Source: Histomonas meleagridis 2922-C6/04-290x
Lineage: Eukaryota; Protista; Parabasalia
Length of the DNA: 64,000 bases
Direction of reading: 5' to 3'
Assembly (NCBI GenBank): GCA_020184695.1
Contig: JAANOX010000256.1
Location: 186,001 to 250,000, forward strand
The translations under genes were made by a program, and so were the position numbers. How positions within the stretch are numbered: position 1 is the first letter of the stretch; each line of letters starts with the position of its first letter. The notes beneath the pieces are model-generated. The model searched no databases. It worked only from the letters and a program-made list of their open reading frames with translations, and had not been told where the DNA came from. Below, piece after piece: positions 45,809-64,000 of this stretch.

Positions 45809-47391
45809 ATGTTTTGCGCATTATTCTTTATTGGTGCATATCAGGAATATACTTTAATAAATGGCACTCTCGAAATAATTGGCGATAGTGTTATTGATGA
45901 TAATACGAAAGAAAAATCATTCCACATTTTCATCAATCGACTCGATATAATTTATAAAAATTTTGAATTCAGTTCTTATCCAAATCTCAAAACAGTTGAA
46001 ATTGGAAACGATGTTAGAGAAATTGGAGAACAAGTATTCAGTTATTGTTATAATTTGACAAAAGTTGTGATTGGAAATGGAGTTAATACAATTGGTGCAG
46101 AAGCATTTCGCAATTGTTCAAACTTGCGAACTGTTATTTTGGGAGAAAATGTTAAAACTATTGGAGAAAAAGCATTTCGTATGTGCTTCAGTTTAGATGA
46201 AATCATCATTCCTGATTCAACATCAGAAATTTCTGAACAAGCATTCAGTTATTGTCATAATTTGACAAAAGTTGTGATTGGAAATGGAGTTAATACAATT
46301 GGTGCAGAAGCATTTCGCAATTGTTCAAACTTGCGAACTGTTATTTCGGGAGAAAATGTTAAAACTATTGGAGAAAAAGCATTCAGTTATTGTACAAATT
46401 TGCATATTGCCATTATTGAAATAATATCACAGTCATCAATGAATATACATTTTATAACTGTGTAAACTTATCAACAATTATTATTGGAGAAAAAGTTATA
46501 GAAATTTGTTATCACGCATTTTATTATTGTGATAATTTAAAATGTATTTATTTTAAAGGTTATAAATCGCCAAATATAAGTGAGGAAGTATTTAGTAATG
46601 TACAACCAAAATATGTTCTGACATCAGAGTTATATCAAGATTCAACATTTGGTGTGTTTGAGGTGTTTAAAGGAAAATCAGTTGAAGAATGTACTCAATA
46701 TCTTTGGCAAACAAATTCGTTTTCTGATTCGAATACATTTACTAAATCTAAATCGTACACACAAAGTAATTCCTTCACTAGGTCGAATACATTTACTAAA
46801 TCTAAATCGTACACACAAAGTAATTCCTTCACTAGGTCGAATACATTTACTAAATCTGAAACATGTTCAAATACATTTTCTGAAATGATTCAAAGTTATA
46901 TCACATTATCATTGACAAATTCATTTACTTATTCATTAATGATTTCATATTCATTAACTCTCTATGAAACACAAACAAAAACATTTTCATTGTTAATTAA
47001 CAATTCAACAAATGTTTATATTGAAACAAAATTTATATATTATGAATACACAGCAATTATTTATTCAACTTATTACAAATATTATTGGAATTACTTAACT
47101 TACATAAATATACATGAAATGCAAACAAGAGATAATAAAATCACAACAGAAACAATTATTATTATCGTTTGTGTTATTGTTATATTTATCATTATAATCA
47201 CATTAGTTATTATATTATTAATTCATATTCGAAACAAAAAATCAGAAGTTAATGAAAATGAAACTTCAGATATAAATGAAACTAATGATATTTCAATGAA
47301 TAACGTTTTAAGCTTAACAAACGTTGAAGAAGATCCATTTGCTGTTGATTTTAAAGAAAATGAATTCGACAAATTTGTCGGATATATATAA
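45809..47391 (+). CDS. BspA-like LRR surface protein (one gene; 1-nt deletion in the A-run at 46419-46421)
   Basis: Adding one A gives ...IIENNITVINEYTFYNCVNL... continuous into the 46654-47391 ORF (527 aa): signal, LRRs, SNTFTKS stalk, TM, EEDPFAVDF tail. Confidence 0.85.
46036..46383 (+). repeat. LRR-pair duplication (46036-46176 and 46243-46383, 207-nt period)
   Basis: Near-identical 141-nt blocks three 23-aa LRR units apart. Confidence 0.88.
46729..46857 (+). repeat. 54-nt tandem repeat in the stalk (SNTFTKSKSYTQSNSFTR), ~2.4 copies
   Basis: TCGAATACATTTACTAAATCT at 46729, 46783 and 46837. Confidence 0.92.
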
Positions 47392-48015
47392 GTTTAGTAT
47401 TACAAATTGATGCTTTGAATAAATAAGAATTTAGTTTTAATTTTTATAGAATTAATATTAAATCCAAAGTTTTTTTGAGAGATTATATACATTTTTAAAG
47501 AAATAATATTTTTGAAGTTGGATTTACTATGACAAAGTTATTAATGATACAAAATAAAAAAATATTTTATATGATTCTAATTTTATAAATTTATATGTAT
47601 TGTCATATTAAATTATCCATAAAATTAATTTTTAATGATATTACACCTATTATATATTGATAAAGTTATACTAATAAGATGTTATACAAAAAATGTAAAT
47701 ATAAGATATATATCCTTTTAATCTTAAGATAAATATATCAGTAATTTAAACAATTGCCATTTTTTCGAAATTAGAACAATCTTATCCATCATAGATATAA
47801 AAATCCTTGTTTAGAAGCAATTTAACTATTTCATTGTTAATTAATAACATGTTATCAAACACCAGCCCATTTCAAAGAAACTGCTGTCAGACGGTTAATT
47901 CTAGTATTCAATTTATGTTCACCGATTTCTTCACCGTAATGTACAAATGTTGGCAGGAAATCAAACCAAAGAAAAAACAACAATCCCGAAGCCTCAAAAT
48001 GAATTGGGAATATTA

Positions 48016-49434
48016 ATGTCAATTAGTAAGGTGATTTTTAATCTAAATAAAGGAAATATTGATCAATCAATTAGATGTGTAACCAATAAATTCAATGATA
48101 TTTACTCAATATCGTTTAACACGATCATAAGCCAAATGATATACTTATTGATGGGTGTGAGAATAAGTAATTCTGAAATTTATTTTAACTTTATGAAAGA
48201 AATCCAAATATTTGAAGAGAATAATAAAAGTAAAACGAAAATTTTCGATATATTTACATGTTTACTGCTCAACAATTACACTCAAGAATCAAATTTCCTT
48301 CTTGGAAATATGATTAAACGCAAATTTATCAAACCCAAAATTATTAAAAAGAAAAAGAATTTGTATTTTATTCATTACATGTCAGATGAAGAAAAAGATG
48401 AATTCTTTTATGATTATTTTGAGGTTGATAACATTGAAGAACTTAAAAAGAATGATTGGGAACTTCATAAGCAATTAATTGAAGAAGGAGTTAATCCGAA
48501 TGAAATTGCGAAAATAATTCGAAATGATGAAATAGAAAAACTTCAAGAAATATCATCACAAAATGATTTTGATTTTAATCAAATAATTAAACCATCACTT
48601 TATGAAAGATGTGATTTTGTTAACAAAGAAAATGTTTCATTAATTGATTATGCCGCATTTTTTGGATCTGTTAAATGTTTTAAATATTTATTATTAAGTA
48701 ATTCTAAATTAACAAACACAGGTAAATATGCAATTGCAGGTGGAAATCTTGAAATCATTCATTTATGTGAACAAAATCATTCATCATTTGAAGGGGCATT
48801 AAAAGTAGCAATTAAATTTTATCGAAATGACATTTTTCTTTATCTTTATGAAAACAAAATGTATAAAAGTAATAATTTAGAAGAATTAGGAAAGAAATGT
48901 ATTTTACATCAAAATTATGAAATTTTCACATTCCTACAAAAAGAAGGTATGAAAATTAATTCTTCATTAATTAATTTAGCAGCGAGAATAGGTAACTTAT
49001 TTTTGATTAGATATTTACTGAAATCTTATCAAATTCCTAAAGATATTTTAGTGTTTTCATCTGAATCAGGAAATAGTGAACTTGTTAAATATGTTTTGCA
49101 ACAAGATGGAATCGATATTAATGCAAAAATTGTTTATATTAATAAATTTATGTTTCAAAACATCATTTGGAATTTGCTCATATGATTTTGGACTGCACTT
49201 ATGTTTGCTTCAAGTAATGGTCATACTGAAACAGTAAAATTACTCCTTGAAAATGAAGAAATTGATGTTGATACTAAAGATATTTGTTTGTTTTATTTAA
49301 TATTCGTTTTGGTAATTTTTGGTAATATTTGGAATATGTTCATATCATTTTGGACTGCACTTAAATATGCTTCAAGGCATGGTTACACCGAAATTGTTAA
49401 AATGATTCTTAAACAAAAATGCAATAGATTCTAA
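48016..49434 (+). CDS. DUF3447-type ankyrin-repeat protein, interrupted by two inserts
   Basis: IRNDEIEKLQE, SLIDYAAFFGSVKCFKYLL, YAIAGGNLEIIHLCEQ; C-terminal canonical ankyrin repeats (TALMFASSNGHTETVKLLL, TALKYASRHGYTEIVKMIL). Removing 48 and 60 nt gives one 436-aa frame. Confidence 0.8.
49139..49186 (+). other. 48-nt ankyrin-linker insert with in-frame TGA (candidate non-canonical intron)
   Basis: Lies between DINAK and TAL; ATTTGG at 49165-49170, 21 nt before the Thr codon; ends ...GAT. Exact boundaries are inferred. Confidence 0.55.
49289..49348 (+). other. 60-nt ankyrin-linker insert (candidate non-canonical intron)
   Basis: Between DTKDIC and FWTAL; TTTATTTA at +4; ATTTGG at 49327-49332; ends ...CAT. 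Confidence 0.55.
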
Positions 49435-49465
49435 TATGAAAAAATATTTTGTAAACAATGAAGGT

Positions 49466-49473
49466 GACCGTTT
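49466..49473 (+). promoter_or_regulatory. M3-like (Myb-type) motif GACCGTTT
   Basis: Fits DRCSGYTD, 27 nt before ATG 49501. GACCGTT also lies near the NME7 and cyclase starts. Confidence 0.45.
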
Positions 49474-49500
49474 AGCATAATTTATAACGTTCGCTAATCA

Positions 49501-50313
49501 ATGTCTTTGGGAAATGTTGGATTTATTGGAGGAGGGAAAATGGCAACATCAATAATTGCTGGCATGTTGAAAAGTGGTTTTGATCCACTTAGGGTAATGG
49601 TTAGTGACATTTCCAAGCCTCAATTAAATTATCTGGAAAACAAATTCCATATTTCAGCAATACCAGACAACAAAAAAATAGCTAAAATGAGCGACGTACT
49701 TGTCTTAGCCGTAAAACCAAAAGATTTCACTGGTGTTTTATCAGAAATTAAAAATGATGTCAGTTCTTCAAAACCAGTTATTTCTATTGCTGGTGGCCTT
49801 ACAATAAGTTACATTGAGAACCAACTTTGCTCAGGTGCAAGAGTACTAAGATCAATGCCTAACATTTGTTCAACAGTGCAAGAAAGCATTACTGCAATTT
49901 GCTGTGGAAAAAACTCAACACCAGCAGATGTAGAGGCCACCAAATCTATTTTTTCATGTGTTGGAACAACAGTTGATATAAATGAATCATTATTTGATGC
50001 ATTTTCTGGTGTTGCTGGTTGTGGCCCTGCATTCATATTTCCTGTTATTGAAGCTCTTGCTGATGGCGCAGTTTATGAAGGAATCAATCGGAAAACAGCA
50101 ATCGAATTAGCAGCAAAAATGATTATTGGTTCAGCAAAATTAGTGTTAAACACAAGTGATCACCCTGAACAGTTAAAAGATTCTGTTTGTTCACCAGGAG
50201 GATCCACAATTGCTGGCGTTAAAACTCTTGAAGAATACAAAGTACGTGCTGCCTTTATGAATGCAGTCATTAATGCTACTGAGAAATCAAAAGAAATGGG
50301 AAAACAAAGTTAG
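49501..50313 (+). CDS. proC: Pyrroline-5-carboxylate reductase
   Basis: GFIGGGKMA (NAD(P)-binding), LAVKP, ISIAGG, RSMPN, GCGPAF, VCSPGGSTIAG. Confidence 0.96.
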   Translation: MSLGNVGFIGGGKMATSIIAGMLKSGFDPLRVMVSDISKPQLNYLENKFHISAIPDNKKIAKMSDVLVLAVKPKDFTGVLSEIKNDVSSSKPVISIAGGLTISYIENQLCSGARVLRSMPNICSTVQESITAICCGKNSTPADVEATKSIFSCVGTTVDINESLFDAFSGVAGCGPAFIFPVIEALADGAVYEGINRKTAIELAAKMIIGSAKLVLNTSDHPEQLKDSVCSPGGSTIAGVKTLEEYKVRAAFMNAVINATEKSKEMGKQS

Positions 50314-51093
50314 ATAATAAAAAATTTGAAAAAAATTACTTTTTTTGCAATAATTTATCGAAAATATGAAAAAAGCAAAAAAAGCTTCTTTTATGAAATC
50401 CATCATTTCTAGAATATTCTTGGATAGAATTTTCTCAAATTGAGATATTATGCTAACTTTTAATGTGTAATATTATATTTTGTGTTTTATATAGATTTAT
50501 GCACCTAATTCTAAGATCTAATCATTTAAAATGATAATAAATTTCAATTGCTTATCAACTTTTTGAATCGAAGATAATCGTGCGAATCTTTTGTAAGCAG
50601 ATTAGAATCACTTTTGGTGTAATTGAAAGCCAAAATGAACAGTGAATAAAATCAAATGATAATATTTATATTTTGTGCACATAAATTATAATGCGAATCG
50701 CAAAATAATTTAACCAACATATATTTATTATGAATAAATCATATAAATAAAATATAAACAATAAATAATTATTGACCCCACTAAAAATACATATGTAGCT
50801 GTATAATTATTTCGATCTCAAAAAGCTCTATCGTTCTCGAACGTAACTTTTTGAATACATTTTCGCGGGGGTTTTCGGCTTGTTTTTTACCGCGGGAAAA
50901 AAACCGTACCGACGTTAATATTATGTGCTCAAATACTAAAATCGGCCGTTACGGTTAAAATCGTTATTTTACCAATTCCACCTACTTTGAAAAAATCACA
51001 AAACTTAACCGCCATCTACACAATGACACTTTTGTCAAAGTGATATGGCTAAATTTCAATTTAAAAAAAAAAAAAAGAAAAAGAAAAAAATAA

Positions 51094-53637
51094 ATGGCGA
51101 ACATAGAGGAACAAATTCATATTTCATTTTCACAAGATCCATCAATTCCTCAAGAACAACGCAACGCAGCAACTAGATTTTTAATGCAATTTCAAGACTC
51201 TCCAGATGCTTTAAATTGGGCATTGGGAACTTATATTAATCAACAAGACAATGTCTTAGCTACGTATGCTTTAATGATTTTTAAGAGAATGTGTCAATTT
51301 CATTTTTCTATGTTAAGTCCAGAAGTTGTAAATCAAATTCGAAACATATTGTTTAATCGTGAATATCATCAAGCACACATTTCACAAGGCACGTTCAAAA
51401 ACAGAGTGACAGATGCTCAAGTTGCGTTTATGTGGCATGTTTACCCAGAGCCATATGGAAATTTCTGGGATGATCTATTTTCATTGGATCGATCAGAGAT
51501 ATTTGAATTTATCCAATCGCTTTGTAGCTATGCAAGTATACTTAATGGAAATGATAATCTTATCTATAACAAAATCAAAGATGCAATGAGAGAAACTGGC
51601 AATGACAACAGAGTTGCCAGTTTTGTTATAGAATTGATGAGGGAAGGGAATGCTGATGCCTATAAATGTTTTGCACATTTTTCCAAGTGGATTAATATAA
51701 ATTATTTATTATCTCAAGAGGGTTTCCAATGCATTATTGATGGCTTTAATTCACCTCAGCTTTGCCAATATTCACTTGATATCTATATACAACTTGTTAC
51801 TCGTGGCATGCCACCCGAACAAAAACTAAGTGTTATCAATAATATCAACATTCGTGAGAAAATTGGATTTATTACATCAACAGAAAATCCACCAATTGAA
51901 TTACTTATATCTGCTGCTCGAGCAATTAATGCCACAGGATTAGAATTAATTAATGAACAACCAATTCTAGAAGATTATCTTAACGTCGCATTAATGTTTA
52001 TTCGAGTGGAAAACGATGACATTAGTGAAGGTGTCATCTCATTATTCCATTCCACAGCCAAGAAATATCCGCAGTATCACCAATTTTTATTAGGTGAACT
52101 CATTAACCGTTTTGAGACATTTTTCAGAGTTCATTCAAATGAGATGATTTCACTTGACGGTTTTGCCGAACAATTAGTGATGGTTATCCATTCAATTGTC
52201 ATGTCCAACGTTAATGCAGCGATGAGTCAAATTAATTCAATATCTCAAGGTAATTTTTATGAAAACTTACCAAAAGCTGCAGCTATAATTCATATTGTTA
52301 GTAATTCATTAACATATAAAGATGAGTCACACCGGCAAATAATTAGTAACTTCATTAATATATTTGCGCCAATAATGCAAGTTCCACCACCAGAAATTGC
52401 GCCATTACATTTATATTGTATTTCTGAGTTTGTTAAATTTTTCATTCCAGCAAGTCCATTATTTGGGCCTGACATTTTCGCATATATTTTTAATGGATTA
52501 AATGGAATAATTCAAAACAATGAAATCATGGATGTTCGAATGACAATATCATCATTATTGAAAACGTTTGTTGAGAAGCTTCAAAACAAAATTCCATTTG
52601 ATCCAAACCAAATTTATTTTTATGTACAAACATGTAATCCTGATTTAGTATCAGCCGCTGCCATTTTAATATGTAATCTTCGAGAGGGTCAAATGGAAAT
52701 CTTCCAACAGTCGTTAGATCGTTTAAAGGAATTTGTTGCAAACTCTGAAAACAAGTTTTATGCGTATGAAGTTATATTATCATTTATACATTCCATTAAA
52801 TATTTTGATAAAGCGCCACATGTACAAATAATTGGTCCATTCATTGAACAAACATTTCCCGAGTTCTTTGAGATAGATCCATTATTAGCGTCATGTATTC
52901 GTGCGTCATATTCATCATTAGGCCCATTTTCTCGCGATTTAATATTACGTGTAATACCACAAATTAAACCTATGTTTAAGTTATCATTAACAGCTGTTTG
53001 TTCCGCGTTAATGGCATTAGTAATCGATAAAGCAGATAATCGTTGGATATGCGATTTCTTACCACATATCAGTCAATTAGTTCTCGCTAATTTCGATAGC
53101 GTTGTCGATTGGACGGCGAAAACAGAAGAAAACAAAGAGACTTTAGATATGATATGTAAATACTTAAAACTTATCACAAAGTTATTGAAGATATCACCGC
53201 AATGTATCGTCCCTCAAACATATGAAAATCTTTGCCAATTTACCAACAAAACTTTCAACAATAACTTCGATATACCAATTTTAATGATGGCAATCATCGA
53301 TATGTTGATGCAATTAATCGGAAACGACTTGAATACTGTGGTCAATTTCGCCCCAATGACTTTGTCGTTCTTGTATTCAAGTAAATTCGACCCATTGTCC
53401 AACGAATGGTTCGATTTATGCAAACGAGTAATGAACTTCCACATTGCTTTACTAAATAAAGAGAAGCAAAACGCAGTGCAATTAATTGCGGAGTCATTCA
53501 AACGCTACGGAGCAAATGATGATTTGATTAGAGGTTACCTCGCTATTTTGGAGTCACCCAGACCAAGAGATAGGGCAGCAAACGGTAGGAATTTCTTCTT
53601 TGAGTTCGCAAAGTTTAGAGCTTCACTTGGGAATTAA
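51094..53637 (+). CDS. XPOT: Exportin-T (Los1/Xpo-t)-like karyopherin
   Basis: YPEPYGNFWDDL, KIKDAMRE, SKWININ, TRGMPPEQKL parallel exportin-T motifs (IKDxMR, WIDI, KGMxPxxK). Confidence 0.72.
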   Translation: MANIEEQIHISFSQDPSIPQEQRNAATRFLMQFQDSPDALNWALGTYINQQDNVLATYALMIFKRMCQFHFSMLSPEVVNQIRNILFNREYHQAHISQGTFKNRVTDAQVAFMWHVYPEPYGNFWDDLFSLDRSEIFEFIQSLCSYASILNGNDNLIYNKIKDAMRETGNDNRVASFVIELMREGNADAYKCFAHFSKWININYLLSQEGFQCIIDGFNSPQLCQYSLDIYIQLVTRGMPPEQKLSVINNINIREKIGFITSTENPPIELLISAARAINATGLELINEQPILEDYLNVALMFIRVENDDISEGVISLFHSTAKKYPQYHQFLLGELINRFETFFRVHSNEMISLDGFAEQLVMVIHSIVMSNVNAAMSQINSISQGNFYENLPKAAAIIHIVSNSLTYKDESHRQIISNFINIFAPIMQVPPPEIAPLHLYCISEFVKFFIPASPLFGPDIFAYIFNGLNGIIQNNEIMDVRMTISSLLKTFVEKLQNKIPFDPNQIYFYVQTCNPDLVSAAAILICNLREGQMEIFQQSLDRLKEFVANSENKFYAYEVILSFIHSIKYFDKAPHVQIIGPFIEQTFPEFFEIDPLLASCIRASYSSLGPFSRDLILRVIPQIKPMFKLSLTAVCSALMALVIDKADNRWICDFLPHISQLVLANFDSVVDWTAKTEENKETLDMICKYLKLITKLLKISPQCIVPQTYENLCQFTNKTFNNNFDIPILMMAIIDMLMQLIGNDLNTVVNFAPMTLSFLYSSKFDPLSNEWFDLCKRVMNFHIALLNKEKQNAVQLIAESFKRYGANDDLIRGYLAILESPRPRDRAANGRNFFFEFAKFRASLGN

Positions 53638-54406: not shown

Positions 54407-57400
54407 TTATTTTGGTTTATCTTCATCACTTGACGATTCGTCGTCACTTTTAATTTTATCATCTTTTGATTTCTTCGACAACTTTCGTGCGTAATACGAG
54501 TTGGCCATGCTGCCAGACGAGGCCACCACCACTTTATTACTAAAGTTCGGTATCAAAAATGTTTGTTTTCCTTGTACGACAGGACCAATTTCGAATTCCA
54601 TTTCATCTACGATTTCATTTTTCACAATTTCGTTCATTATAATTCTATTTGGCGCATTAATTTCCAACAAGTTATGAGTTTCTTCAATTATTTGGCCTGA
54701 TATTGTGAACATTCTTTGATTTCCGATGTTCATTACTGTACAATATATTGGTCCTCCTACTGCTACGCTAACCTTCACACTAAATTCCTTTAAATCATTA
54801 TCATCGATTGTTTCCAAATCTTTAATTACATCAATTCCGAAACGAACAGCATTTTTCGATTGTGGGACTTTATTATTTTCTGATTCGAACAAACCAGAAA
54901 TTGCTAAATATATATCAGGTGTTTGTCGTTGTCTAATGAAAGGAGGATGTAAATTACAGATATGATCGAAACGTTCATATAACTTTGTGATTAAATGTAA
55001 ATAATCTTCTTGATCATTTTTCTTTAATGTATCGAAGAAGCCACAAATTTGGATGGCAATAATCGTAACATTCTTTGATATGAATGAAAAGTCTTGATGA
55101 TCTTCTCGAATGAAACCTTGTACATCACTTGGTATTAATTGGTTCATTAAATGGTCAACTTTATCTTTAGCTTTTTGGATCTCTGTTTGTAATTGGAAAT
55201 CTTCTGTTTGATCCTTAAAGAAGATTAAGAAACTTGAAGCAGTATCTTGTAGAAAGTCATAAATTCCATAAATTATAGTATCACATTGTATAATTTTATT
55301 ATCTCCTCGTAAGAATTCTAAATTAGAAATATGAATACTTTTCTCTTCGTTTTCTATCAAAAGTTTCTCTTCAATGGCTTGATAAAATTTATATGATGAA
55401 ATATCATTTTGTGATTCTAATGTATTCTCATCTCCATCGACTTGTTTAATAATACCATCAATCTTTTGGCCAATGATTTGTGCTCGTGGGAATTTTAATA
55501 TAGTTTTAGCTGCTTCATTCATAGAGTTTATAGTTTTATCATTACCAATTGTTATTATAGCAGTAGGTAAATAATCATAAATAACTTGATTAAGAGTCTT
55601 TTGTTCAAATTCATCATATTGATAATTACTCATTAAAATGGAATATAACTTTTGTGAATTAGATATCGATGGTGGTGGTACTCTACGGATTAATATTAAA
55701 CAAGTTTTAATTAATTTATTATAATAATGTGAAAACCAAATCATTAAATAAAATAAAATAATAAATAAGATAATAGTTAATATAAATATGATAATACTCA
55801 TAATAATAATTAAATTCTTTTTTGATGAAAATTCAGTCGTTAATATTAAATTAGATTGTTCTAAACCATTAGATAATTCAGCCATTGTTATATGATAAAA
55901 ATCTATATATGAAGTAGATTGAAATGTCGAAGTTGTATCGAAATTATTTGTATATATATTAAATGTAGAAATTAAACTTTCTAATGATAAACATTTATAA
56001 AAATCATGTTCACTAGAACCTTCATTTGATTGACATTGTTCTTTAGAATATAAATTATCAATATCAGTAATTACACCTTTCATTCCTTTAAAATCATTAG
56101 TACCAGAATATAATTTGTTTTCTTCATTAGTTAAGTCAATAACTAAATTGGAGATTTCTTTATAGATATCTTCCGATGTAATATAATTAACATTTTCATT
56201 ATTATATAATAACATTGAAGATACTCTTAAAAATATGGAATATAATAATGAATTACGTTTCGATGCTTGAATTGTCCATTTAACAATTTCATTTAAATTA
56301 TTATAAAAATCTCGATAAAAATATGCAAATAAAAATAAAAAGACAATAATTAATATTAATACTAATGCATCGATAATACCTAAAATCACATTTTTAGCTT
56401 TTGTCATTCTAATTGGATGATGTATAGCTTTCTTATCATCATTATTTTCAGATTGTACAACTAATTTCGAAGCAAATTTAGCATCTTCTTTATCGACTTC
56501 TAACATAGCTTTAAAGACATGTGTATAATCTCTTCCATATATTAATAATATCATATGACTTAAAGGAAATACGATTACTATAACAATAATAGGCATAGCA
56601 ATTTGATATATCGATAAAAACCTATAACGACCATTAAGGAATTCATTAAAATGATTAATTAATTGATTTAATGAGAAATCAATTGCATTTGGAAACTCTA
56701 AAATAAATTCAAGTAATTGACACATATTTCGTGCTTTTAATATAGTTGAAGGATCATTACTTACTAATAAATCATAAATATAATATGTTAATTTAGAACT
56801 TGCACTAATTAATGAAGTGTTTTTATAGAATTTGATAATAGCATCATTACTACACATAGGTCGAGTAATAGTATTATTAGTATAAGCTATAGATTCATAA
56901 GTGATTTCTGTTGTTCCTTCAACTATAGCCCAAGTACGTTGAAACATATCACTAAATGATTGTACCATACTTTGAGTTAAGTTTAATGTACTTTGTCTTA
57001 ATTCTTTATATGAGATTAATAATTGTTCATTATATGCATCCCCATATATACTTTTATTATAAAGTTCTTCATCAAAGAATTTACCTAAACCTTCTGATTC
57101 ATACATTATTAATGAAATTGAAGCTAATAAAGAATTTTTGGCTAATTCTTTCCCATTATAAAATTGATAATAATAATTAATCGACTTATTTAATTGTGGA
57201 AATATTAACCCAAATATTAAACTATAACCTATTAACCAGATTAACGCTGAAATGATTAATGAAGCTATACCTAATTTTAAGTTCTTCGGTTGATAATGTG
57301 ATGTAGCTCTATATAATGACTTACGTAAATTAGGCCATTGATAAGTCTTTCGTATGATTTCATCTGCTATGCCACTATTTAAATCATCTTCAATCTTTTC

Positions 57401-59212
57401 GATAGCTGTTGTAGATATACTTAATGATGTACCATTAATTTCATATCCACTCTTTTGAATATTTCCACTTTTATCACATATTTTCTCAGTAATAATCATC
57501 GGAATAGCACCAGCTAATGCTCGAAAGATTGGATCAATATCAGAATGAAAACCTTTTTGTAAATGTCCACTTTTAAGTTTCATAAAAACACCATTCTCTG
57601 GACTAACAGCACATTCAAGTAAAAACTCGGAATAACCATTAGGGAAACGTGAATCATTTGGATATGTATCGATACCAGTTTTCCATAAATTCTTTGATTC
57701 TTCAAACTTAGAAGAAATTGTTTCTAATAAATAACTATCGACTATTTCTGGATTATTAGCAATTTTTAACCAAACTTCTCTTATAGATGATAATAATTCA
57801 CTTGTACTTTGTAATGCTTCATTATATTGTAATGTAGCTTCACCAGAATTCGAAGTAAAACGTTTTAAAAAGATTGAGCGTAATCGAAATGTATAATATT
57901 TTTGTATAAATGTTCGAGGTGTTTTAGTTAATATTAAACTTAAGAAATATGATAACGCTTGTTGTTCCCCAGGGAAAAATGATACGTATAATGCTGATGT
58001 ATAAAGTGATTCTAAATCAGGATTAGCTTGTGATAAATAATATAAAAATGACCAATCATTAATTAATGTATTAAATGTAACCATTCCAACGTTTTTGATT
58101 ACTTCTAATGTGTTTAAATTCTTTATATTTAATGAATCAAAATATTGATTCTTTTCGAGTTCTGTATGTGAATCAATTTGTGTTAATATTTCAAGACATT
58201 TCTTATACATTAATCGAAATATTAAATAAAAAATGATTAATCCTATAATAAATATACAAATTGGTATTAAGAAATGTACATATATATTAACATGAATTCC
58301 TGATATTGATATTATCGTAAGAATATGACCTGTAATTGTTGCACAATATAATGAATCCATAAAAACACTTGCAAACATATGTACATAAACAATTCGAAAT
58401 GATACTATTATCCAAAATATTAAAAATATTATATGAAGTATAATAATGACATATTGAATCCATGTTTGAAATAAACTCGTGATTTCTACACATACAAAAT
58501 AAATGGCATATGATACTACTGATAAATTAAAATGAACTCCATTTAAGTCTGCTAATGGTGATGGATTTGGATTAATTAAAAAACCATTTAATTGTCCTAC
58601 AAAAACTGTTATTAAAACAGAATAAATAAATGCTAAAATGGCAAATATTATTGAAAATATTCCTCCAACATTGTTAGTAAAATTACGAAATAACATGGAT
58701 AATTGACCTGAAAATGGAATTAATAACAAGATAAATACAATTTGGGTAATAAAAGCATTGACATATAATACTTTCTTGTTGTAAGCACGTTTCCCACCAG
58801 AATACATTGATAACGCTATTAACCAAATTCCACATAATACATATACTATCGCAAAAATTATAAGTAAAGCTGCATTAAAATTTGGACCAAATGTTAAAAT
58901 TTCATCTGCGACTTCAGCAATATGATTTGAATCCCAAATATTACGAAGAAATGGTGAAAACATTATTAAAAACATCTCTACAATTGGAAATACATATTGA
59001 AGTGCCCAATAAAGCCACGAAAAAATTCCGAGTGTTGATGTTTCATATGTTATGTGGAAAAAAGAACCTTGTAAAGAATCCGCTTTAAAAAATGATGAAT
59101 GAATTAATTGGGATTGAAGAACTTCAGGATTTTCATCTATAAAGTTACTTGGCATTGTGTGTGATATTTCATTGGATACTGGAGCCTTCTGAAGCAGAGC
59201 TTCCTCATCCAT
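54407..59212 (-). CDS. Multi-TM receptor-type class III nucleotidyl cyclase-like protein with PAS domain (catalytic residues degenerate)
   Basis: N-terminal TM cluster, further TMs, PAS-like region (NEAAKTILKFPRAQIIGQKID), coiled helix LMNQLIPSDV, C-terminal cyclase fold (VTIIAIQICGF, DIYLAISG, VGGPIYC). Confidence 0.85.
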   Translation of the reverse strand: MDEEALLQKAPVSNEISHTMPSNFIDENPEVLQSQLIHSSFFKADSLQGSFFHITYETSTLGIFSWLYWALQYVFPIVEMFLIMFSPFLRNIWDSNHIAEVADEILTFGPNFNAALLIIFAIVYVLCGIWLIALSMYSGGKRAYNKKVLYVNAFITQIVFILLLIPFSGQLSMLFRNFTNNVGGIFSIIFAILAFIYSVLITVFVGQLNGFLINPNPSPLADLNGVHFNLSVVSYAIYFVCVEITSLFQTWIQYVIIILHIIFLIFWIIVSFRIVYVHMFASVFMDSLYCATITGHILTIISISGIHVNIYVHFLIPICIFIIGLIIFYLIFRLMYKKCLEILTQIDSHTELEKNQYFDSLNIKNLNTLEVIKNVGMVTFNTLINDWSFLYYLSQANPDLESLYTSALYVSFFPGEQQALSYFLSLILTKTPRTFIQKYYTFRLRSIFLKRFTSNSGEATLQYNEALQSTSELLSSIREVWLKIANNPEIVDSYLLETISSKFEESKNLWKTGIDTYPNDSRFPNGYSEFLLECAVSPENGVFMKLKSGHLQKGFHSDIDPIFRALAGAIPMIITEKICDKSGNIQKSGYEINGTSLSISTTAIEKIEDDLNSGIADEIIRKTYQWPNLRKSLYRATSHYQPKNLKLGIASLIISALIWLIGYSLIFGLIFPQLNKSINYYYQFYNGKELAKNSLLASISLIMYESEGLGKFFDEELYNKSIYGDAYNEQLLISYKELRQSTLNLTQSMVQSFSDMFQRTWAIVEGTTEITYESIAYTNNTITRPMCSNDAIIKFYKNTSLISASSKLTYYIYDLLVSNDPSTILKARNMCQLLEFILEFPNAIDFSLNQLINHFNEFLNGRYRFLSIYQIAMPIIVIVIVFPLSHMILLIYGRDYTHVFKAMLEVDKEDAKFASKLVVQSENNDDKKAIHHPIRMTKAKNVILGIIDALVLILIIVFLFLFAYFYRDFYNNLNEIVKWTIQASKRNSLLYSIFLRVSSMLLYNNENVNYITSEDIYKEISNLVIDLTNEENKLYSGTNDFKGMKGVITDIDNLYSKEQCQSNEGSSEHDFYKCLSLESLISTFNIYTNNFDTTSTFQSTSYIDFYHITMAELSNGLEQSNLILTTEFSSKKNLIIIMSIIIFILTIILFIILFYLMIWFSHYYNKLIKTCLILIRRVPPPSISNSQKLYSILMSNYQYDEFEQKTLNQVIYDYLPTAIITIGNDKTINSMNEAAKTILKFPRAQIIGQKIDGIIKQVDGDENTLESQNDISSYKFYQAIEEKLLIENEEKSIHISNLEFLRGDNKIIQCDTIIYGIYDFLQDTASSFLIFFKDQTEDFQLQTEIQKAKDKVDHLMNQLIPSDVQGFIREDHQDFSFISKNVTIIAIQICGFFDTLKKNDQEDYLHLITKLYERFDHICNLHPPFIRQRQTPDIYLAISGLFESENNKVPQSKNAVRFGIDVIKDLETIDDNDLKEFSVKVSVAVGGPIYCTVMNIGNQRMFTISGQIIEETHNLLEINAPNRIIMNEIVKNEIVDEMEFEIGPVVQGKQTFLIPNFSNKVVVASSGSMANSYYARKLSKKSKDDKIKSDDESSSDEDKPK

Positions 59213-60137
59213 TTTCTAACGGTCAAGATTATTGAGGAAAATTTCGAATTTGTAAACTATTGAAAGTATTGAAATGTCAGAACATTTCAAACCATTATAA
59301 CGTGTGTTTTTACTTTTTGTGAAACATTTAGTAACGTGTTTTATCCTCGCGGCTTTTTGTATTATGAATGTTTGGCTGAATCTGGACAAAAATTAAAATT
59401 TAAAATTCTTGTCATATATATATAATTATCAATAATAAATAATGAATTAATAATAAAATTACTTAGGATTTATAATATTATAATAAAATTGTTGAATTTA
59501 TTAAATATCTAAGTATAAAAATATTTTATCGCTTTATAGAGTTTTGATTAGTTTACATAATAAAAATATCAAAAAGTTATAATTCTTTGAATGTTGATTA
59601 GTGAACAAAAAAAAAATTAAAACAATCCATTTGTTTTCCAAATTTGAGTAATATATATATAAAATAAATTTTCGAAGCAAGATGAATTCTATTTTAAGTA
59701 ACTTTAATTTGATGATTGATTCTCAGATTCCTAAGAATAGTATATTATTGAATATTTGTATCATTTCCATTTTTTTATAAGAAGTAAATATATGATTTCT
59801 TTTGGATTTAATCTGATTGGTTTCTTCTATTTTATCAATCTCTTTCTTGAAATTTATGTATTTTTCTTATTTTAAAATTAAAATCATTTATCATTTTTAA
59901 TCAACAACATTTCTTTATACTTCATTTTCTGCTGTACAGCATTGGATAAAATGTAAAAAAAAATTGGAATATATTTACTCATATCTACAAATGAAAGAAA
60001 AAAAATCAAAAAGTTCTGCTAAGTTTTTTATTAGTTTGAATTTTAATTTTCGATACTTAAATCAATTTTTTTCTGTTCGATTAATTGATCAATATCATGA
60101 TTCCCATTTTTGCATGCATAAATAAGAGCTGTATATT

Positions 60138-60205
60138 ATAATTTTAATAAAAGCCAAATCTTTTAATGAAACACCAAATAATTTAATAAAAATCTAAATA
60201 AAGTT
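60138..60205 (-). other. 68-nt frameshifting ankyrin-linker insert
   Basis: AACTTTATTTA...ATTTGG...AAATTAT; removal destroys TAA stops and gives QNAWKYTAL. Confidence 0.55.
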
Positions 60206-60307
60206 TCCAAGCATTTTGAGCATTGATATTAATTCCTTCTTGTTCAAGAAGTAATTTAACTGTTTCTGTTTGATCTCTTTGAGAGGCTAAAATAAGTGCT
60301 GTATTAA

Positions 60308-60375
60308 ATATTTTCGATATTTTCCATATGTATATATTAAATATTATATTGCTAAAATAAATTTTAAATAAAACT
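60308..60375 (-). other. 68-nt frameshifting ankyrin-linker insert
   Basis: AGTTTTATTTA...ATATGG...AAAATAT; removal destroys a TAG and gives RCVYFNTAL. Confidence 0.55.
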
Positions 60376-60477
60376 AATAGACACATCTATTATTAATATC
60401 AATTCCCTTTTGTTCAAGAAGCAATTTAATTATTTCAACCTTTCCATTTTCAGATGCAAACATAAGTGCAGTTTTAA

Positions 60478-60528
60478 ATATTTTAAATATTTTCCATATT
60501 TTAATTTGAAATATTAAAACTTTATTAC
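60478..60528 (-). other. 51-nt ankyrin-linker insert (copy B)
   Basis: GTAATAAAG...ATATGG...AAAATAT; removal gives KDNIFKTAL. Confidence 0.55.
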
Positions 60529-60630
60529 AAATATTATCTTTTGCATTAATATCAATTCCCTTTTGTTCAAGAAGCAATTTAATTATTTCAACATTACCTT
60601 TTTCTACTGCGAGAAGAAGTGCAGTTTTAA

Positions 60631-60681
60631 ATATTTTAAATATTTTCCATATTTTAATTTGAAATATTAAAACTTTATTAC
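60631..60681 (-). other. 51-nt ankyrin-linker insert (copy A)
   Basis: Identical to 60478-60528 at a 153-nt offset. Confidence 0.55.
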
Positions 60682-60842
60682 GAATTTTGTTCAAGGGCTT
60701 TCAGAAATCAAACGAATCATTGATTTTATTTTGTTTTAAGAGGAGAATGCAAAAAAGTCACTTTTACACCAAAACAACTTTTTGTGATTATGAAAATAAC
60801 GGCTCCGATAGAGTTTTTTTAGCCACAAATGAATATTTTTCA

Positions 60843-61121
60843 TTAAATTCTGGTGAAAGTTTCTTCTTTTAAATCATTCGCAAATGGATCTTCTTCAATA
60901 TTTGTGATCTATATTCCTTTATTAAACGATGTAATTTCATTAGAATTTTTGTTTTCATCACTAATTTTTGTTTCTCCTGAAAAAACGATGTGCCGATTTG
61001 ATAAATAAATGAACATAACAATAAATATTGTAATAATAACAACAATTATGATACCAATGATAATATAAACATTGTTTGATATTATTACATTAACATTATG
61101 GAAAGAGTTGAAACATTCCAA
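60843..61121 (-). pseudogene. TM plus EEDPF-tail relic of a surface-protein gene
   Basis: YIIIGIIIVVIITIFIVMFIYL TM; in-frame TAG at 60909-60911, then ITNIEEDPFANDLKEETFTRI-stop; no ectodomain upstream. Confidence 0.65.
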
Positions 61122-61380
61122 AATCTATTCTGTGGATTCAAATATACCAAAATAAATAAAAATTTTGATTTGATCAAATCAAAATATATGTCAAATATCT
61201 TATTATCAGAAAAATTAACTATTTATGGAATGTAATTATGGAAGGAATGGGCGAGATTTAATGTAATTGGGCCTAAAATATTTTTATGAAATTTTGAGCA
61301 AAATGTTAAGTTTCTCCATAATTCAATGATTTATTTGAAAGTGCTAGGAAAATTCAGATACCTATTGTTTGCATTTTACC

Positions 61381-63321
61381 ATGTTTCTCTTTTTTTTAGA
61401 GATTGTCCAAATTAGCGAACTTCATCTAAATGCGATCACAAATATGTCATCTTATGTTACATCTATTAATTGGACAAATATCACAGATCTTGATGTGTAT
61501 TACAAGATTTTTAGGCAAATAAGATATTCAAGTGGTAGCTGGTCAGATTGGGAACAAATTAATATGTATCAAGAAACAGAAAAAATAAATGTTTTAAATG
61601 TATATCCAAGTCAAATTGATGGATATAAAGGGCAGGCTTCTAACACAAATACTTCTTACACAACCCATTTAGTTAATTATACATTTGGTGAAGATAAAAA
61701 AATTTATTCGTTACCAAATTCAGCATCATTAAAAGTTTGGCTTGAAGGAGGAACGATTAATGACCACGACACAATTACAGAATTTCAACCAGTTGGAATA
61801 AATCCCAACACAAGCGAGCAAATGATTTTTGTTACACCGATATCGATAAATGATTTCGAATCTAACATAAGTACTAATCCCGATTTTATATACGAATATG
61901 ACATTATCTTTTTTGGCACATGGGAAGGTAGTTCAGGTTATAACATTAAAACAGAAACTGCCGAAAACATAATTTCTGAGTACATAAGCAATGGCTATGG
62001 CGTTATAGCCAGCTGCGACACACTTGGAAACTCTTTTTATGTTAATAATAAAACAGAAAGTTTATTAACGATACGAAATTTATTTGGCGTTGTAACATTT
62101 GGCGCTGATGACAATATCACAGGTACAAATGGAACAACAATACGACCAAATTACACGACAATTCATTCGACGCGAATTATAAATCAACGAAAAGGCTTAT
62201 TAACAACATATCCATATAAACTTTCTAATGACACAATGGAAATCTCTAATTCGAGCACGAATTTAAATGGGATTATCAAAGGCGACATATGGTATAAATA
62301 TGATACAATAGAAGAAGAAAACGAAAGTGATTTTTTAGAGAATAATTTTTATTTATCGACACATAATAATACAGCAATAATTAATTTATGTAATAGTAAT
62401 AATAACACGATAACGAAAGAAGAACTAAAAATATTAACAAATTTAATATATTATTTAAAGAAAAGGAATTATAACACATACATTGATCAAATAACTAAAG
62501 ATACAGAAGCGCCCATCATTCGAGATATATTATATGATCCCACAATATACTCCGCAAAGATTACTGCTGAAGATATCGATTCGACATATAGATACAAAGT
62601 TTTTGCATATTCCGTGTCTAACGAAAGTAATTATGTTGCATCTAATGAAATAACTATAAATATATTAACTGGAATTAATTATTATAATTATACAATTACA
62701 CCAACAGAAAACATCGAAAGAGATAACTTAACAAAGTTAACTAAAGATACAATAATTCCTCTTTCACGAGAACAAATACAAAATGGAATGTATTTGCATA
62801 TATTCGCTGTCGATCGAGTCGGAAACATTGGCGATATTAAAAGTTGGCAAATTCCAATTCCAACTCCGACTCCTTATCCGACTGCTTCTTTATTACCAAG
62901 TAATTTAACATATTCTTTAACAATTACTTTTACAAAATCAATTTCGATGTTTAACTCTTTGTTAAATTATTCATATATAACACAAACAGAAACAATTTCA
63001 AATTTGGTAATAACTTTTACTGAATTAATTGTTTATAATTATTCGTATATATTTTATACTTCGTTTTCCGATTTCTATACTGCTTTTTATAATACTTATC
63101 CAACGTATCTCGGAAAAGATGACATAAGTATTGTCATAATTTCAAGTGTTTCTGTGGTTGTCGCATTAATCATTTGCGCAATTGTGGTTGCTATCATTAT
63201 TGTATATAACAAAAAATATAAAGATGTAAGTAGAAACTCAAATGAAATGGAAGTGGTCAATGAAACAACTGAAAGTTTTTCATTAAATAATTCTTTTAAT
63301 CCAGAAGAAGATAAAAATTAA
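61381..63321 (+). CDS. Single-pass surface protein with a class-I GATase-like/DUF5057-like ectodomain and the BspA-type stalk-TM module
   Basis: Signal MFLFFLEIV; INVLNVYP, YDIIFFGTWEG, YISNGYGVIASCDTLG motifs; PTPTP hinge, LTYSLTITFT/Tyr-rich stalk, TM IVIISSVSVVVALIICAIVVAIIIVY. The domain name comes from recalled motif similarity only. Confidence 0.7.
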   Translation: MFLFFLEIVQISELHLNAITNMSSYVTSINWTNITDLDVYYKIFRQIRYSSGSWSDWEQINMYQETEKINVLNVYPSQIDGYKGQASNTNTSYTTHLVNYTFGEDKKIYSLPNSASLKVWLEGGTINDHDTITEFQPVGINPNTSEQMIFVTPISINDFESNISTNPDFIYEYDIIFFGTWEGSSGYNIKTETAENIISEYISNGYGVIASCDTLGNSFYVNNKTESLLTIRNLFGVVTFGADDNITGTNGTTIRPNYTTIHSTRIINQRKGLLTTYPYKLSNDTMEISNSSTNLNGIIKGDIWYKYDTIEEENESDFLENNFYLSTHNNTAIINLCNSNNNTITKEELKILTNLIYYLKKRNYNTYIDQITKDTEAPIIRDILYDPTIYSAKITAEDIDSTYRYKVFAYSVSNESNYVASNEITINILTGINYYNYTITPTENIERDNLTKLTKDTIIPLSREQIQNGMYLHIFAVDRVGNIGDIKSWQIPIPTPTPYPTASLLPSNLTYSLTITFTKSISMFNSLLNYSYITQTETISNLVITFTELIVYNYSYIFYTSFSDFYTAFYNTYPTYLGKDDISIVIISSVSVVVALIICAIVVAIIIVYNKKYKDVSRNSNEMEVVNETTESFSLNNSFNPEEDKN

Positions 63322-63677: not shown

Positions 63678-64000
63678 TTATTTATTTCTAAGAAATAGCT
63701 TATTAATTTTTTCTTTTTTGATAAAAACTTTTTTATTTTTATTTTTATTACTTCGTAATTCTTCATAATATGGAGAAAATATAGTTTGAATATTTGAAGG
63801 TGTATTCAAAAGCATTGTCCTAAATAATTGATATAAAACAAACGAACATCTTTTACATCAACTTCAATTCCTTTTGCAATAAGAGATTTAATAATTACTT
63901 CTTTATTTTGAAAAGGTTTTTCGATTGCATAAAAAAGTGCTGTTTGAAATAATTTGAATAATATTATTTTGGTATACAAAAATTTTAAAATACATATTGT
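63678..64000 (-). pseudogene. 3' part of a third ankyrin-repeat gene with linker inserts (runs off the window end)
   Basis: FQTALFYAIEKPFQNKEVIIKSLIAKGIEVDVKDVRLFY; flanked by AT-rich non-ankyrin segments, the downstream one containing a TGA. Not captured by the ORF track. Confidence 0.6.

Follow-up and report, generated by a model that had tools for sequence, protein, structure and literature searches.

How can a gene whose ankyrin repeats are interrupted, at one fixed place in the linker, by stop codons and frameshifts still specify ankyrin repeats? The question is raised by a 64,000-nucleotide stretch of the Histomonas meleagridis 2922-C6/04-290x genome (assembly GCA_020184695.1, contig JAANOX010000256.1, positions 186,001 to 250,000), hereafter the window, which is AT-rich eukaryotic DNA throughout. 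On its forward strand a gene at 47947–49434 encodes a DUF3447 region followed by ankyrin repeats, as judged from the list of open reading frames (ORFs) and Pfam. Extra AT-rich sequence lies between the (D/N)xK(D) and T-A-L codons of its repeats at 49.1–49.4 kb (+), and again at 60.0–60.7 kb (-), as an original prediction made from the DNA alone had pointed out. In the 49-kb gene 60 nt separate ...GIDINAK from TGG ACT GCA CTT (W-T-A-L), and this insert 1 contains a TGA at 49183–85; in the following repeat 69 nt run from GAT to TGG ACT, and this insert 2 is in frame. The 60-kb locus harbours four insert-bearing repeats, two in frame and two frame-shifting, and a third similar ankyrin locus is found at 63.7–64.0 kb (-). 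In the window and its relatives the flanks coding for the repeats are intact, whereas stops and frameshifts lie inside the inserts, a pattern that agrees with the processing proposed originally. The answer put forward here is that each linker insert is likely to be an array of separate 17-nt intervening elements, which are transcribed and then excised from the RNA, rebuilding the ankyrin repeats. The elements are most likely intron-like, with single codons serving as exons.

The evidence that carries this reading comes from public runs that contain the window, namely two DNA samples (2021) and RNA from 2023 and 2013, a set in keeping with the published H. meleagridis genome project (PMC8529796). 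Logan contigs of DNA run X1 and of RNA runs X2, X3 and X7 were compared with positions 47001–53000. One RNA contig, X3 record 21 (1375 nt, depth 132), matches in succession 48877–49131, then reads TATGGA, matches 49189–49282, reads a single A and matches 49318–50335; the three matching flanks of 255, 94 and 1018 nt are exact, with zero differences. TATGGA stands for the 57 nt of 49132–49188, which fits three 17-nt deletions, and A stands for 49283–49317, which fits two. Five elements are missing from this contig, while a DNA contig and an RNA contig of lower depth retain them. Across insert 1 the RNA encodes K-I-Y-G-W-T-A-L, which is a normal hairpin of the ankyrin type and includes the conserved Gly, and the product after the 17-nt deletions reads DINAKIYGWTAL. 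Six distinct sets of deletion lengths can produce TATGGA with three deletions, 17/17/17 (keeping TAT and GGA) being one, and six two-deletion splits can leave the single A, 17/17 being one. Two simpler accounts of insert 1 were rejected: reading the sequence directly shows that TATGGA cannot be assembled from any prefix and suffix of the 57 nt, which dismisses a single contiguous deletion, and TATGGA is absent from the insert, which dismisses a 6-nt micro-exon.

These observations preserve the core of the original prediction and replace its anatomy. An unrecognised processing at a fixed linker position, rather than inert insertions in pseudogenes, is upheld, as is its placement in RNA, for most of each insert is missing from the RNA contig, whereas a contig of the organism's DNA retains the inserts. 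One contiguous intron per linker had been envisaged, with one junction register giving IVYIW, DICFW, DNIFK, CVYFN and NAWKY; instead, there are two to four separate 17-nt elements with single kept codons between them, the RNA contig gives AK-IYG-WTAL, which needs several separate deletions, and a parse at a period of 20 nt across the wider set of loci yields Gly-containing hairpins. The junction peptides NAKIVYIWTAL and TKDICFWTAL are not expected, the RNA contig yielding NAKIYGWTAL. The reported excess lengths of 51, 68 and 68 nt stand, corresponding to 3 × 17, 4 × 17 and 4 × 17, that of 60 nt equals 51 plus three extra codons, and that of 48 nt is really 51 according to the RNA contig.

The second RNA run shows where the two forms meet. 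One X2 contig stops at 49131 and the next begins at 49189, and a contig spanning 49102–49218 retains the insert at a depth of 9.9, compared with 19.7 and 20.4 for its neighbours, so that RNA contains both forms. The depth of this run in the intergenic bins of 50401–51000 is 0.7 and ∼2 in two of three, and 39.9 in the bin 50601–50800. In the DNA, X1 record 5 is unbroken over 48877–49303 at a depth of 520, against 497–507 for neighbouring single-copy contigs, which argues against a second, insert-less genomic copy with identical flanks. The same contigs bear on the possibility that the processed RNA originates elsewhere, from a chimeric path through paralogs or from a strain or allele difference, the inserts being inert and the genes pseudogenes. 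The family is very large, with a summed contig depth at 48401–48800 thousands of times the single-copy value, and k-mer assemblies can switch between paralogs; moreover, insert 1 of the 49-kb gene carries an in-frame TGA and the Met start of the 60-kb locus is conjectural. A chimeric assembly is nevertheless unlikely because the RNA flanks are exact and the DNA contig is unbranched over insert 1 at single-copy depth. In addition, the rule drawn from the RNA contig fits independent loci, where it gives canonical hairpins containing Gly, and decay would preserve neither an exact 17-nt length nor stop-free coding blocks. An origin from elsewhere is thus very improbable. Pseudogene decay was rejected as a candidate in its own right, failing on exact lengths, intact coding blocks and phase-specific hairpin codons.

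Excision might alternatively take place in the DNA, some nuclei or extrachromosomal copies without elements serving as template for the processed RNA. Contigs prove presence and not absence, so that a rare DNA form would escape, and short direct repeats occur at several junctions, with AAATT flanking the first element of insert 1. However, the depth of unprocessed RNA, roughly half that of its flanks, is well over intergenic background, the processed form appears in no DNA contig, and a partly processed product of insert 2, with two of three elements gone, fits stepwise RNA processing. Removal from DNA retains only a slim chance, and we infer that the elements are removed from RNA and not in rare DNA copies.

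The length of the elements and their positions are fixed, and the layout is conserved over paralogs and related organisms. The comparison loci were metagenome contigs L001–L003 and L008–L011, whose products are 54–64% identical to the window protein, and L012, a 21-kb piece of H. meleagridis assembly GCA_020186115.1 (contig WSYJ01000186.1). A regular expression applied to the window, L012 and the metagenome relatives returned 39 candidate repeat starts, including about four false positives. GGN is positioned exactly 17 nt plus one codon 5' of the Thr of TAL in 30 of the 39; the spacer is otherwise 16 nt in four, 15 in one, 18 in one and 0 in none, and GGN counts at every spacer from 0 to 40 nt other than 17 range between 0 and 4. 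As GGN never occurs at spacer 0, an uninterrupted G-x-T-A-L is essentially absent from the DNA of the ankyrin family. The hexamer AT(T/A)TGG, originally reported to end 21 nt 5' of the Thr codon, is indeed there in all six inserts and is made up of the ATTT at the 3' end of one element and the Gly codon GGN after it. A metagenome paralog harbours an uninterrupted hairpin without Gly (L002:1830–1870; RLNSKNVMFESAL), and element-free repeats therefore do occur in the family.

Codon content follows the same period. In cleanly parsing arrays the triplets 20 and 40 nt 5' of GGN encode A, R, N, D, S, K, Y, H, E and the like: phase 0 of the 20-nt period is 97% polar or small with zero stops, while the remaining phases are 7–73% polar or small, encode mostly F, I and L, and contain up to eight stops in some cases. 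Spacing between the DxN motif and the Thr codon shows a sharp peak at 89 nt (14/34), equal to 4 × 17 nt plus seven codons, and distances of 92, 72 and 69 likewise equal n × 17 plus six to eight codons. Hairpins parsed in L012 and the metagenome relatives include DINKKD-HEG-RTAL, DVNTND-HDG-STPL, DINPMD-YDG-KTPI, HINASD-KDG-LTSL and DVNAKD-NKG-NTAL; inside the window the parse gives INAKDN-NG-KTAL. Most paralog ORFs on the comparison contigs end soon after ...DINAKD in a hydrophobic tail, with further ankyrin blocks in other frames, and L012:11300–21266 contains, over ∼10 kb that has no called gene on record, upwards of 20 ankyrin repeat blocks in the 17-nt, one-codon layout. Varying the length of the upstream element (three elements) is non-discriminating, as each 1-nt change displaces the end of the exon by 3 nt, leaving the frame unchanged; dynamic programming for the longest stop-free path rates all skip lengths of 3n+2 about equally, and a long ordinary ORF dominates L012.

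These data also speak to the view that the inserts remain in the mRNA, to be translated as hydrophobic extensions of the hairpin or bypassed by the ribosome. Three-element arrays (51 nt) keep the frame, as in the 106-aa ORF at 60377–60694 and in the Histomonas-like paralog P0015, and unprocessed RNA is present. Yet the most frequent array amounts to 68 nt and shifts the frame, many inserts contain stops, the elements are physically missing from the RNA contig, and the hydrophobic read-through is what translation of T-rich DNA gives. The 77-aa ORF reading through insert 2 was searched against 1.84 billion representative proteins, and among 203 proteins (150 matches listed and 53 paralogs) P0015 alone has a hydrophobic insert in the hairpin; this rarity argues against a translated loop. 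Retention in the mRNA is, on this evidence, highly unlikely. A protein search with the sequence predicted from the processed RNA contig gave no match, and a scan of JGI metagenomes with the family alignment returned only three distant loci, which were not used.

What the elements share is above all their size. A wider set of 72 has the consensus (A/G)TTT-N9-ATTT, with a purine at position 1, T at 2–4, mostly A at 14 and T at 15–17, and a composition of 56% T, 31% A and ∼7% each of C and G. The 5' dinucleotides are AT in 34, GT in 20, AA and TT in six each and GC in four; the 3' dinucleotide is TT in 55 and AG in one. With length strictly 17 and termini so varied, length is conserved far more than the terminal nucleotides. 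The sole junction with unambiguous placement (49172–49188) is AT...TT. The narrow length range of minimal introns (15–17 nt) is matched, codons aligning only at the 20-nt period, whereas the canonical splice dinucleotides of minimal fixed-length introns of the Mikrocytos and Stentor type are lacking. Nor do the elements resemble U12-type AT-AC introns (5' ATATCC, 3' AC, branch site TCCTTAAC): those starting with AT continue with TTT, and no 3' AC is listed.

On the proposed mechanism, each linker would hold two to four T-rich 17-nt elements between successive codons of the beta-hairpin tip, usually laid out as ...D-(17)-x-(17)-x-(17)-G-(17)-x-T-A-L..., and the codons between them would be 3-nt exons for the polar x-x-G residues. 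The elements would be transcribed and then removed from the RNA, each independently of the others, which would rebuild an ordinary repeat of 33/34 residues; the processed form would yield junction peptides such as ...DINAKIYGWTALMFASSNGHTETVK. We lean to a splicing-type reaction in which every element is recognised as one unit with a fixed minimal length, that is, intron definition without GT-AG, under which a 3-nt exon would need no recognition of its own. A strongly derived spliceosomal route is a serious possibility, falling a little short of an even chance. Excision by a dedicated cut-and-join system, an endonuclease and ligase or a guide-dependent activity that measures 17 nt regardless of the ends, would leave the main proposal intact and change only the machinery. 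It draws on the better conservation of length than of terminal nucleotides, on the AT...TT ends of the unambiguous junction, and on the requirement of parabasalid introns for GT...(A/T)CTAAC...AG and at least 23 nt (PMC12316389). It is set back by the predicted folds of five inserts, in which no bulge-helix-bulge or consistent shape was seen, z being ∼0 in four, by the absence of a candidate enzyme or guide, and by the fact that a fixed minimal length is equally typical of the tiniest spliceosomal introns (PMC10245619). We regard it as rather unlikely, and all other explanations taken jointly as somewhat less likely still. Tentatively, and at less than even probability, the elements may represent a new class of intervening sequence whose machinery measures length instead of reading GT-AG and so permits single-codon exons.

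Several points weigh against RNA excision of 17-nt elements. The RNA evidence at the 49-kb locus comes from two runs, the first giving one de Bruijn contig (k = 31) and the second the break points; contigs omit rare variants, among which a processed DNA form could hide; and the types of the runs, DNA or RNA, are a tool's guess. X3 record 21 still contains the predicted third element of insert 2 (49334–49350), which leaves the last repeat out of frame. Against a spliceosomal reaction in particular, parabasalid introns described so far have GT, an (A/T)CTAAC branch motif and AG, measure at least 23 nt and occur about once per gene (PMC12316389). Compared with these U2-type introns (types A and B), the 72 elements begin with GT in 20 cases against AT in 34 and end with AG in one case against TT in 55, so the originally noted lack of GT-AG ends extends to the wider set; the lack of the trichomonad motif ACTAACACACAG was likewise borne out, no match with up to two mismatches occurring in or near the inserts. 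No structure is common to the five inserts folded by minimum free energy, although no dedicated search for the bulge-helix-bulge motif of tRNA-type introns was made; their z-scores are +0.5, -0.1, -0.4, -2.9 and -0.5. Excision defined by structure was rejected on the same five inserts. With no GT-AG, branch motif or consistent fold, no known machinery is implicated, and we know of no described precedent for 3-nt exons between 17-nt introns.

The out-of-frame end of X3 record 21 has a simple interpretation, as we take the contig to be a transcript processed in part. Omitting the third element of insert 2, which would be removed under the GGN rule, restores the frame to ...GWTALKYASRHGYTEIVKMILKQKCNRF and the stop (...TKDNLVIFGWTALKYASRHGYTEIVKMILKQKCNRF and the stop), and this single partial product suggests that elements are taken out one at a time, independently of each other. 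Beyond the five elements missing from the contig, removal of most elements is drawn from comparative constraint, and by extension every element would be removed. The parts of the three loci are collected in the table. A 10-nt tandem duplication (ttttggtaat twice) lies inside insert 2 at 49307–49326 (+) and probably explains the four extra codons (L V I F) kept in this hairpin. In the L001 paralog TAT is kept at the position matching the Tyr codon of insert 1.

Parts of the three ankyrin loci in the window and their parsed or predicted 17-nt elements
Feature	Coordinates	Strand	Details
49-kb gene, first coding block	47947..49131	+	N-terminal region, DUF3447 and ankyrin repeats, to ...GIDINAKI; ORF, Pfam DUF3447/Ank_2/Ank_3; paralogs 54–64% identical; covered by RNA contigs
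Insert 1, element 1, GTTTATATTAATAAATT	49132..49148	+	17 nt; not in X3 record 21; AAATT repeat permits placement up to 5 nt leftward
Kept codon TAT (Tyr)	49149..49151	+	First half of TATGGA in RNA contig
Insert 1, element 2, GTTTCAAAACATCATTT	49152..49168	+	17 nt; placement ±1 nt; not in X3 record 21
Kept codon GGA, conserved hairpin Gly	49169..49171	+	In RNA contig; GGN at same offset in 30/39 starts
Insert 1, element 3, ATTTGCTCATATGATTT	49172..49188	+	17 nt; placement unambiguous; AT...TT ends; holds TGA; not in X3 record 21
Coding block WTALMFASSNGHTETVKLLLENEEIDVDTKD, one ankyrin repeat	49189..49281	+	Exact in RNA contig; Pfam Ank
Insert 2, element 1, ATTTGTTTGTTTTATTT	49282..49298	+	17 nt; placement ±1 nt; 17+17 split of RNA contig
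Kept codon AAT (Asn)	49299..49301	+	Follows from RNA contig GAT-AAT-TTG...
Insert 2, element 2, ATTCGTTTTGGTAATTT	49302..49318	+	Not in RNA contig
Kept 15 nt TTG GTA ATA TTT GGA (L V I F G)	49319..49333	+	In RNA contig; longer-than-usual hairpin
Insert 2, predicted element 3, ATATGTTCATATCATTT	49334..49350	+	Between GGA and TGG ACT; rule of GGN + 17 nt + codon + Thr
Last coding block WTALKYASRHGYTEIVKMILKQKCNRF and stop	49351..49434	+	ORF, Pfam
60-kb locus, candidate gene start	60701..60720	-	ATG 60720–60718, then 17-nt element 60717–60701 (ATTCGTTTGATTTCTGA)
Insert D	60629..60685	-	Elements 60685–60669, 60665–60649, 60645–60629; kept AAT, GGA; GGN rule
Insert C	60476..60532	-	Elements 60532–60516, 60512–60496, 60492–60476; kept AAT, GGA; reads D-N-N-G-K-T-A-L
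Insert E	60306..60382	-	Elements 60382–60366, 60362–60346, 60342–60326, 60322–60306; kept AAA, AAT, GGA; NRC-KNG-NTAL
Insert F	60136..60212	-	Elements 60212–60196, 60192–60176, 60172–60156, 60152–60136; kept AGA, GGT, GGC; AQN-RGG-YTAL
Last coding block YTALIYACKNGNHDIDQLIEQKKIDLSIEN and stop	60043..60135	-	ORF, conceptual product
Third locus, predicted single 17-nt element, GTTCGTTTGTTTTATAT	63831..63847	-	After ...EVDVKD; locus runs off window end

With 14 17-mers left out, the 60-kb locus becomes a single open frame of four canonical repeats, ...NGKTAL...DNNGKTAL...CKNGNTAL...NRGGYTAL..., closed by a stop. Insert E shifts the frame because its elements total 68 nt (4 × 17), and 68 nt (4 × 17) are also removed at insert F. 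At the start of the locus, omission of ATTCGTTTGATTTCTGA would set an ATG in frame with KPLNKNGKTAL..., although the 3' end of this candidate element is atypical; judged from sequence, the locus may be a complete small gene. Sampled words of the locus are found in the RNA runs at a fraction of 0.24–0.31, a value that fits exon-only words and partial expression alike. Inserts D and C, together with the intervening repeat (60476–60685, -), form a near-identical tandem duplication with a unit of 153 nt (34 codons plus 3 × 17 nt), so that repeat-plus-element units duplicate as a whole. At the third locus, omitting the putative processed element GTTCGTTTGTTTTATAT joins the ankyrin frame to an open tail of 50 codons, whereas retaining it leads to a stop after 13 codons. 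The upstream repeat of this locus (63944–63975, -) has a consensus-like last element (tattattcaaattattt) but TAA in the place of the Gly codon; this copy may be damaged or follow a variant rule, its upstream part lying beyond the window end.

The 49-kb product belongs to the parabasalid family of ankyrin repeat proteins with a DUF3447 N-terminal region, as indicated by Pfam (47947–49182: Ank_2 4.5e-10, DUF3447 6.5e-08) and by its homologs, the closest named relative being H. meleagridis protein P0018, with Tritrichomonas foetus proteins farther off; at the 60-kb locus, 60377–60694 matches Ank at 1.7e-16. The neighbouring genes encode a pyrroline-5-carboxylate reductase (49501–50313), an importin-beta-like protein (51094–53637) and a PAS/cyclase membrane protein (54407–59212, -). 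The last is a multi-pass membrane protein of 1601 aa with a PAS domain and a C-terminal adenylate/guanylate cyclase catalytic domain, similar to a transmembrane cyclase family known in Trichomonas. Three further ORFs (46654–47391, +; 60909–61121, -; 61369–63321, +) have alike tails, in which a short acidic motif (...NVEEDPFAVDFKENEF, ...NIEEDPFANDLKEETF and ...NPEEDKN) comes after a hydrophobic stretch; they appear to form a family of single-pass surface proteins, with no Pfam match above threshold. The 60.9-kb member is only a fragment adjoining the ankyrin locus, its NIEEDPFANDLKEETF tail lying just 3' of the stop of the 60909–61121 ORF in a different frame. Among the metagenome contigs, a DDE transposase gene of the IS1595 family (Pfam) is present at L003:4380–5279 and L004:4622–5521, ∼2.5 kb 3' of the ankyrin gene on the contig of the Histomonas-like organism.

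If removal from RNA holds, these loci display a new gene layout, with tandem 17-nt intervening sequences, single-codon exons and no GT-AG, which probes how small an exon or intron can be and still be recognised, and raises the question of what machinery is capable of it. Under the tentative length-measuring reading, a large ankyrin family of the Histomonas lineage would be 'encrypted' in the DNA and unseen by gene finders, and the elements would be either selfish passengers spread by duplication of 20-nt units or a switch on which members are expressed. The H. meleagridis genome paper reports ∼11,000 genes and 573–638 introns, at most one per gene, and leaves ankyrin genes unmentioned (PMC8529796); its gene count probably misses part of the ankyrin family, most of which seems to be absent from the published annotation, an annotation gap that concerns an important poultry parasite. 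The layout is not described in the full-text literature searched on Histomonas and Trichomonas introns, very short introns and non-canonical splicing in Parabasalia. The rule itself, to omit RTTT-N9-ATTT 17-mers at a 20-nt period, yields precise cDNA and peptide predictions.

Known systems resemble the 17-mers in part. The internal eliminated sequences of ciliates are likewise short AT-rich inserts in coding sequence that are precisely removed, albeit from DNA and with TA boundaries; the 17-mers are retained in DNA contigs, occur in both forms in RNA and do not end in TA. Translational bypass elements, such as those of phage T4 gene 60 and the mitochondrial 'byps' of Magnusiomyces, present in many copies per genome, are also short non-coding inserts that leave the protein intact, but they remain in the mature mRNA and are skipped by the ribosome, whereas five 17-mers are missing from the RNA contig. 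Euglenid nonconventional introns are removed from pre-mRNA without the GT-AG rule. They and the non-canonical introns of tunicates vary in length, and the euglenid ones rely on pairing of the intron ends; the 17-mers, by contrast, are fixed at 17 nt, with no end pairing or stable fold seen. Non-GT-AG introns of tunicates such as Fritillaria and Oikopleura are removed by the major spliceosome, a pre-mRNA removal outside the GT-AG rule like that proposed here and a point in favour of a derived spliceosomal route (PMC13326754).

Closer in phylogeny are the type B introns of Trichomonas (23–25 nt), which belong to the same phylum, are T-rich and very short, and in some cases reside in ankyrin or other repeat-protein genes (PMC12316389). 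Type B introns possess GT, a TCTAAC branch motif and AG, and a gene has no more than one or two of them, whereas the 17-mers are without all three signals and number up to four per repeat. Ultra-short spliceosomal introns retain GT...AG ends and are scattered singly in ordinary exons. The 17-mers differ from them in starting with AT or GT in 54 of 72 cases and ending with TT in 55 and AG in one, and in forming tandem arrays with one codon between elements, seen so far in ankyrin hairpins only. Ultra-short introns of Mikrocytos mackini (16–17 nt), Stentor-type heterotrichs (15–16 nt) and chlorarachniophyte nucleomorphs (18–21 nt) are likewise removed from the transcript at a near-invariant minimal length. 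The shortest spliceosomal introns, those of Mikrocytos and the heterotrich ciliates, are locked to one length (PMC10245619). Their sequences are highly conserved, unlike those of the 17-mers, but the tight constraint on length is common to both (PMC10245619).

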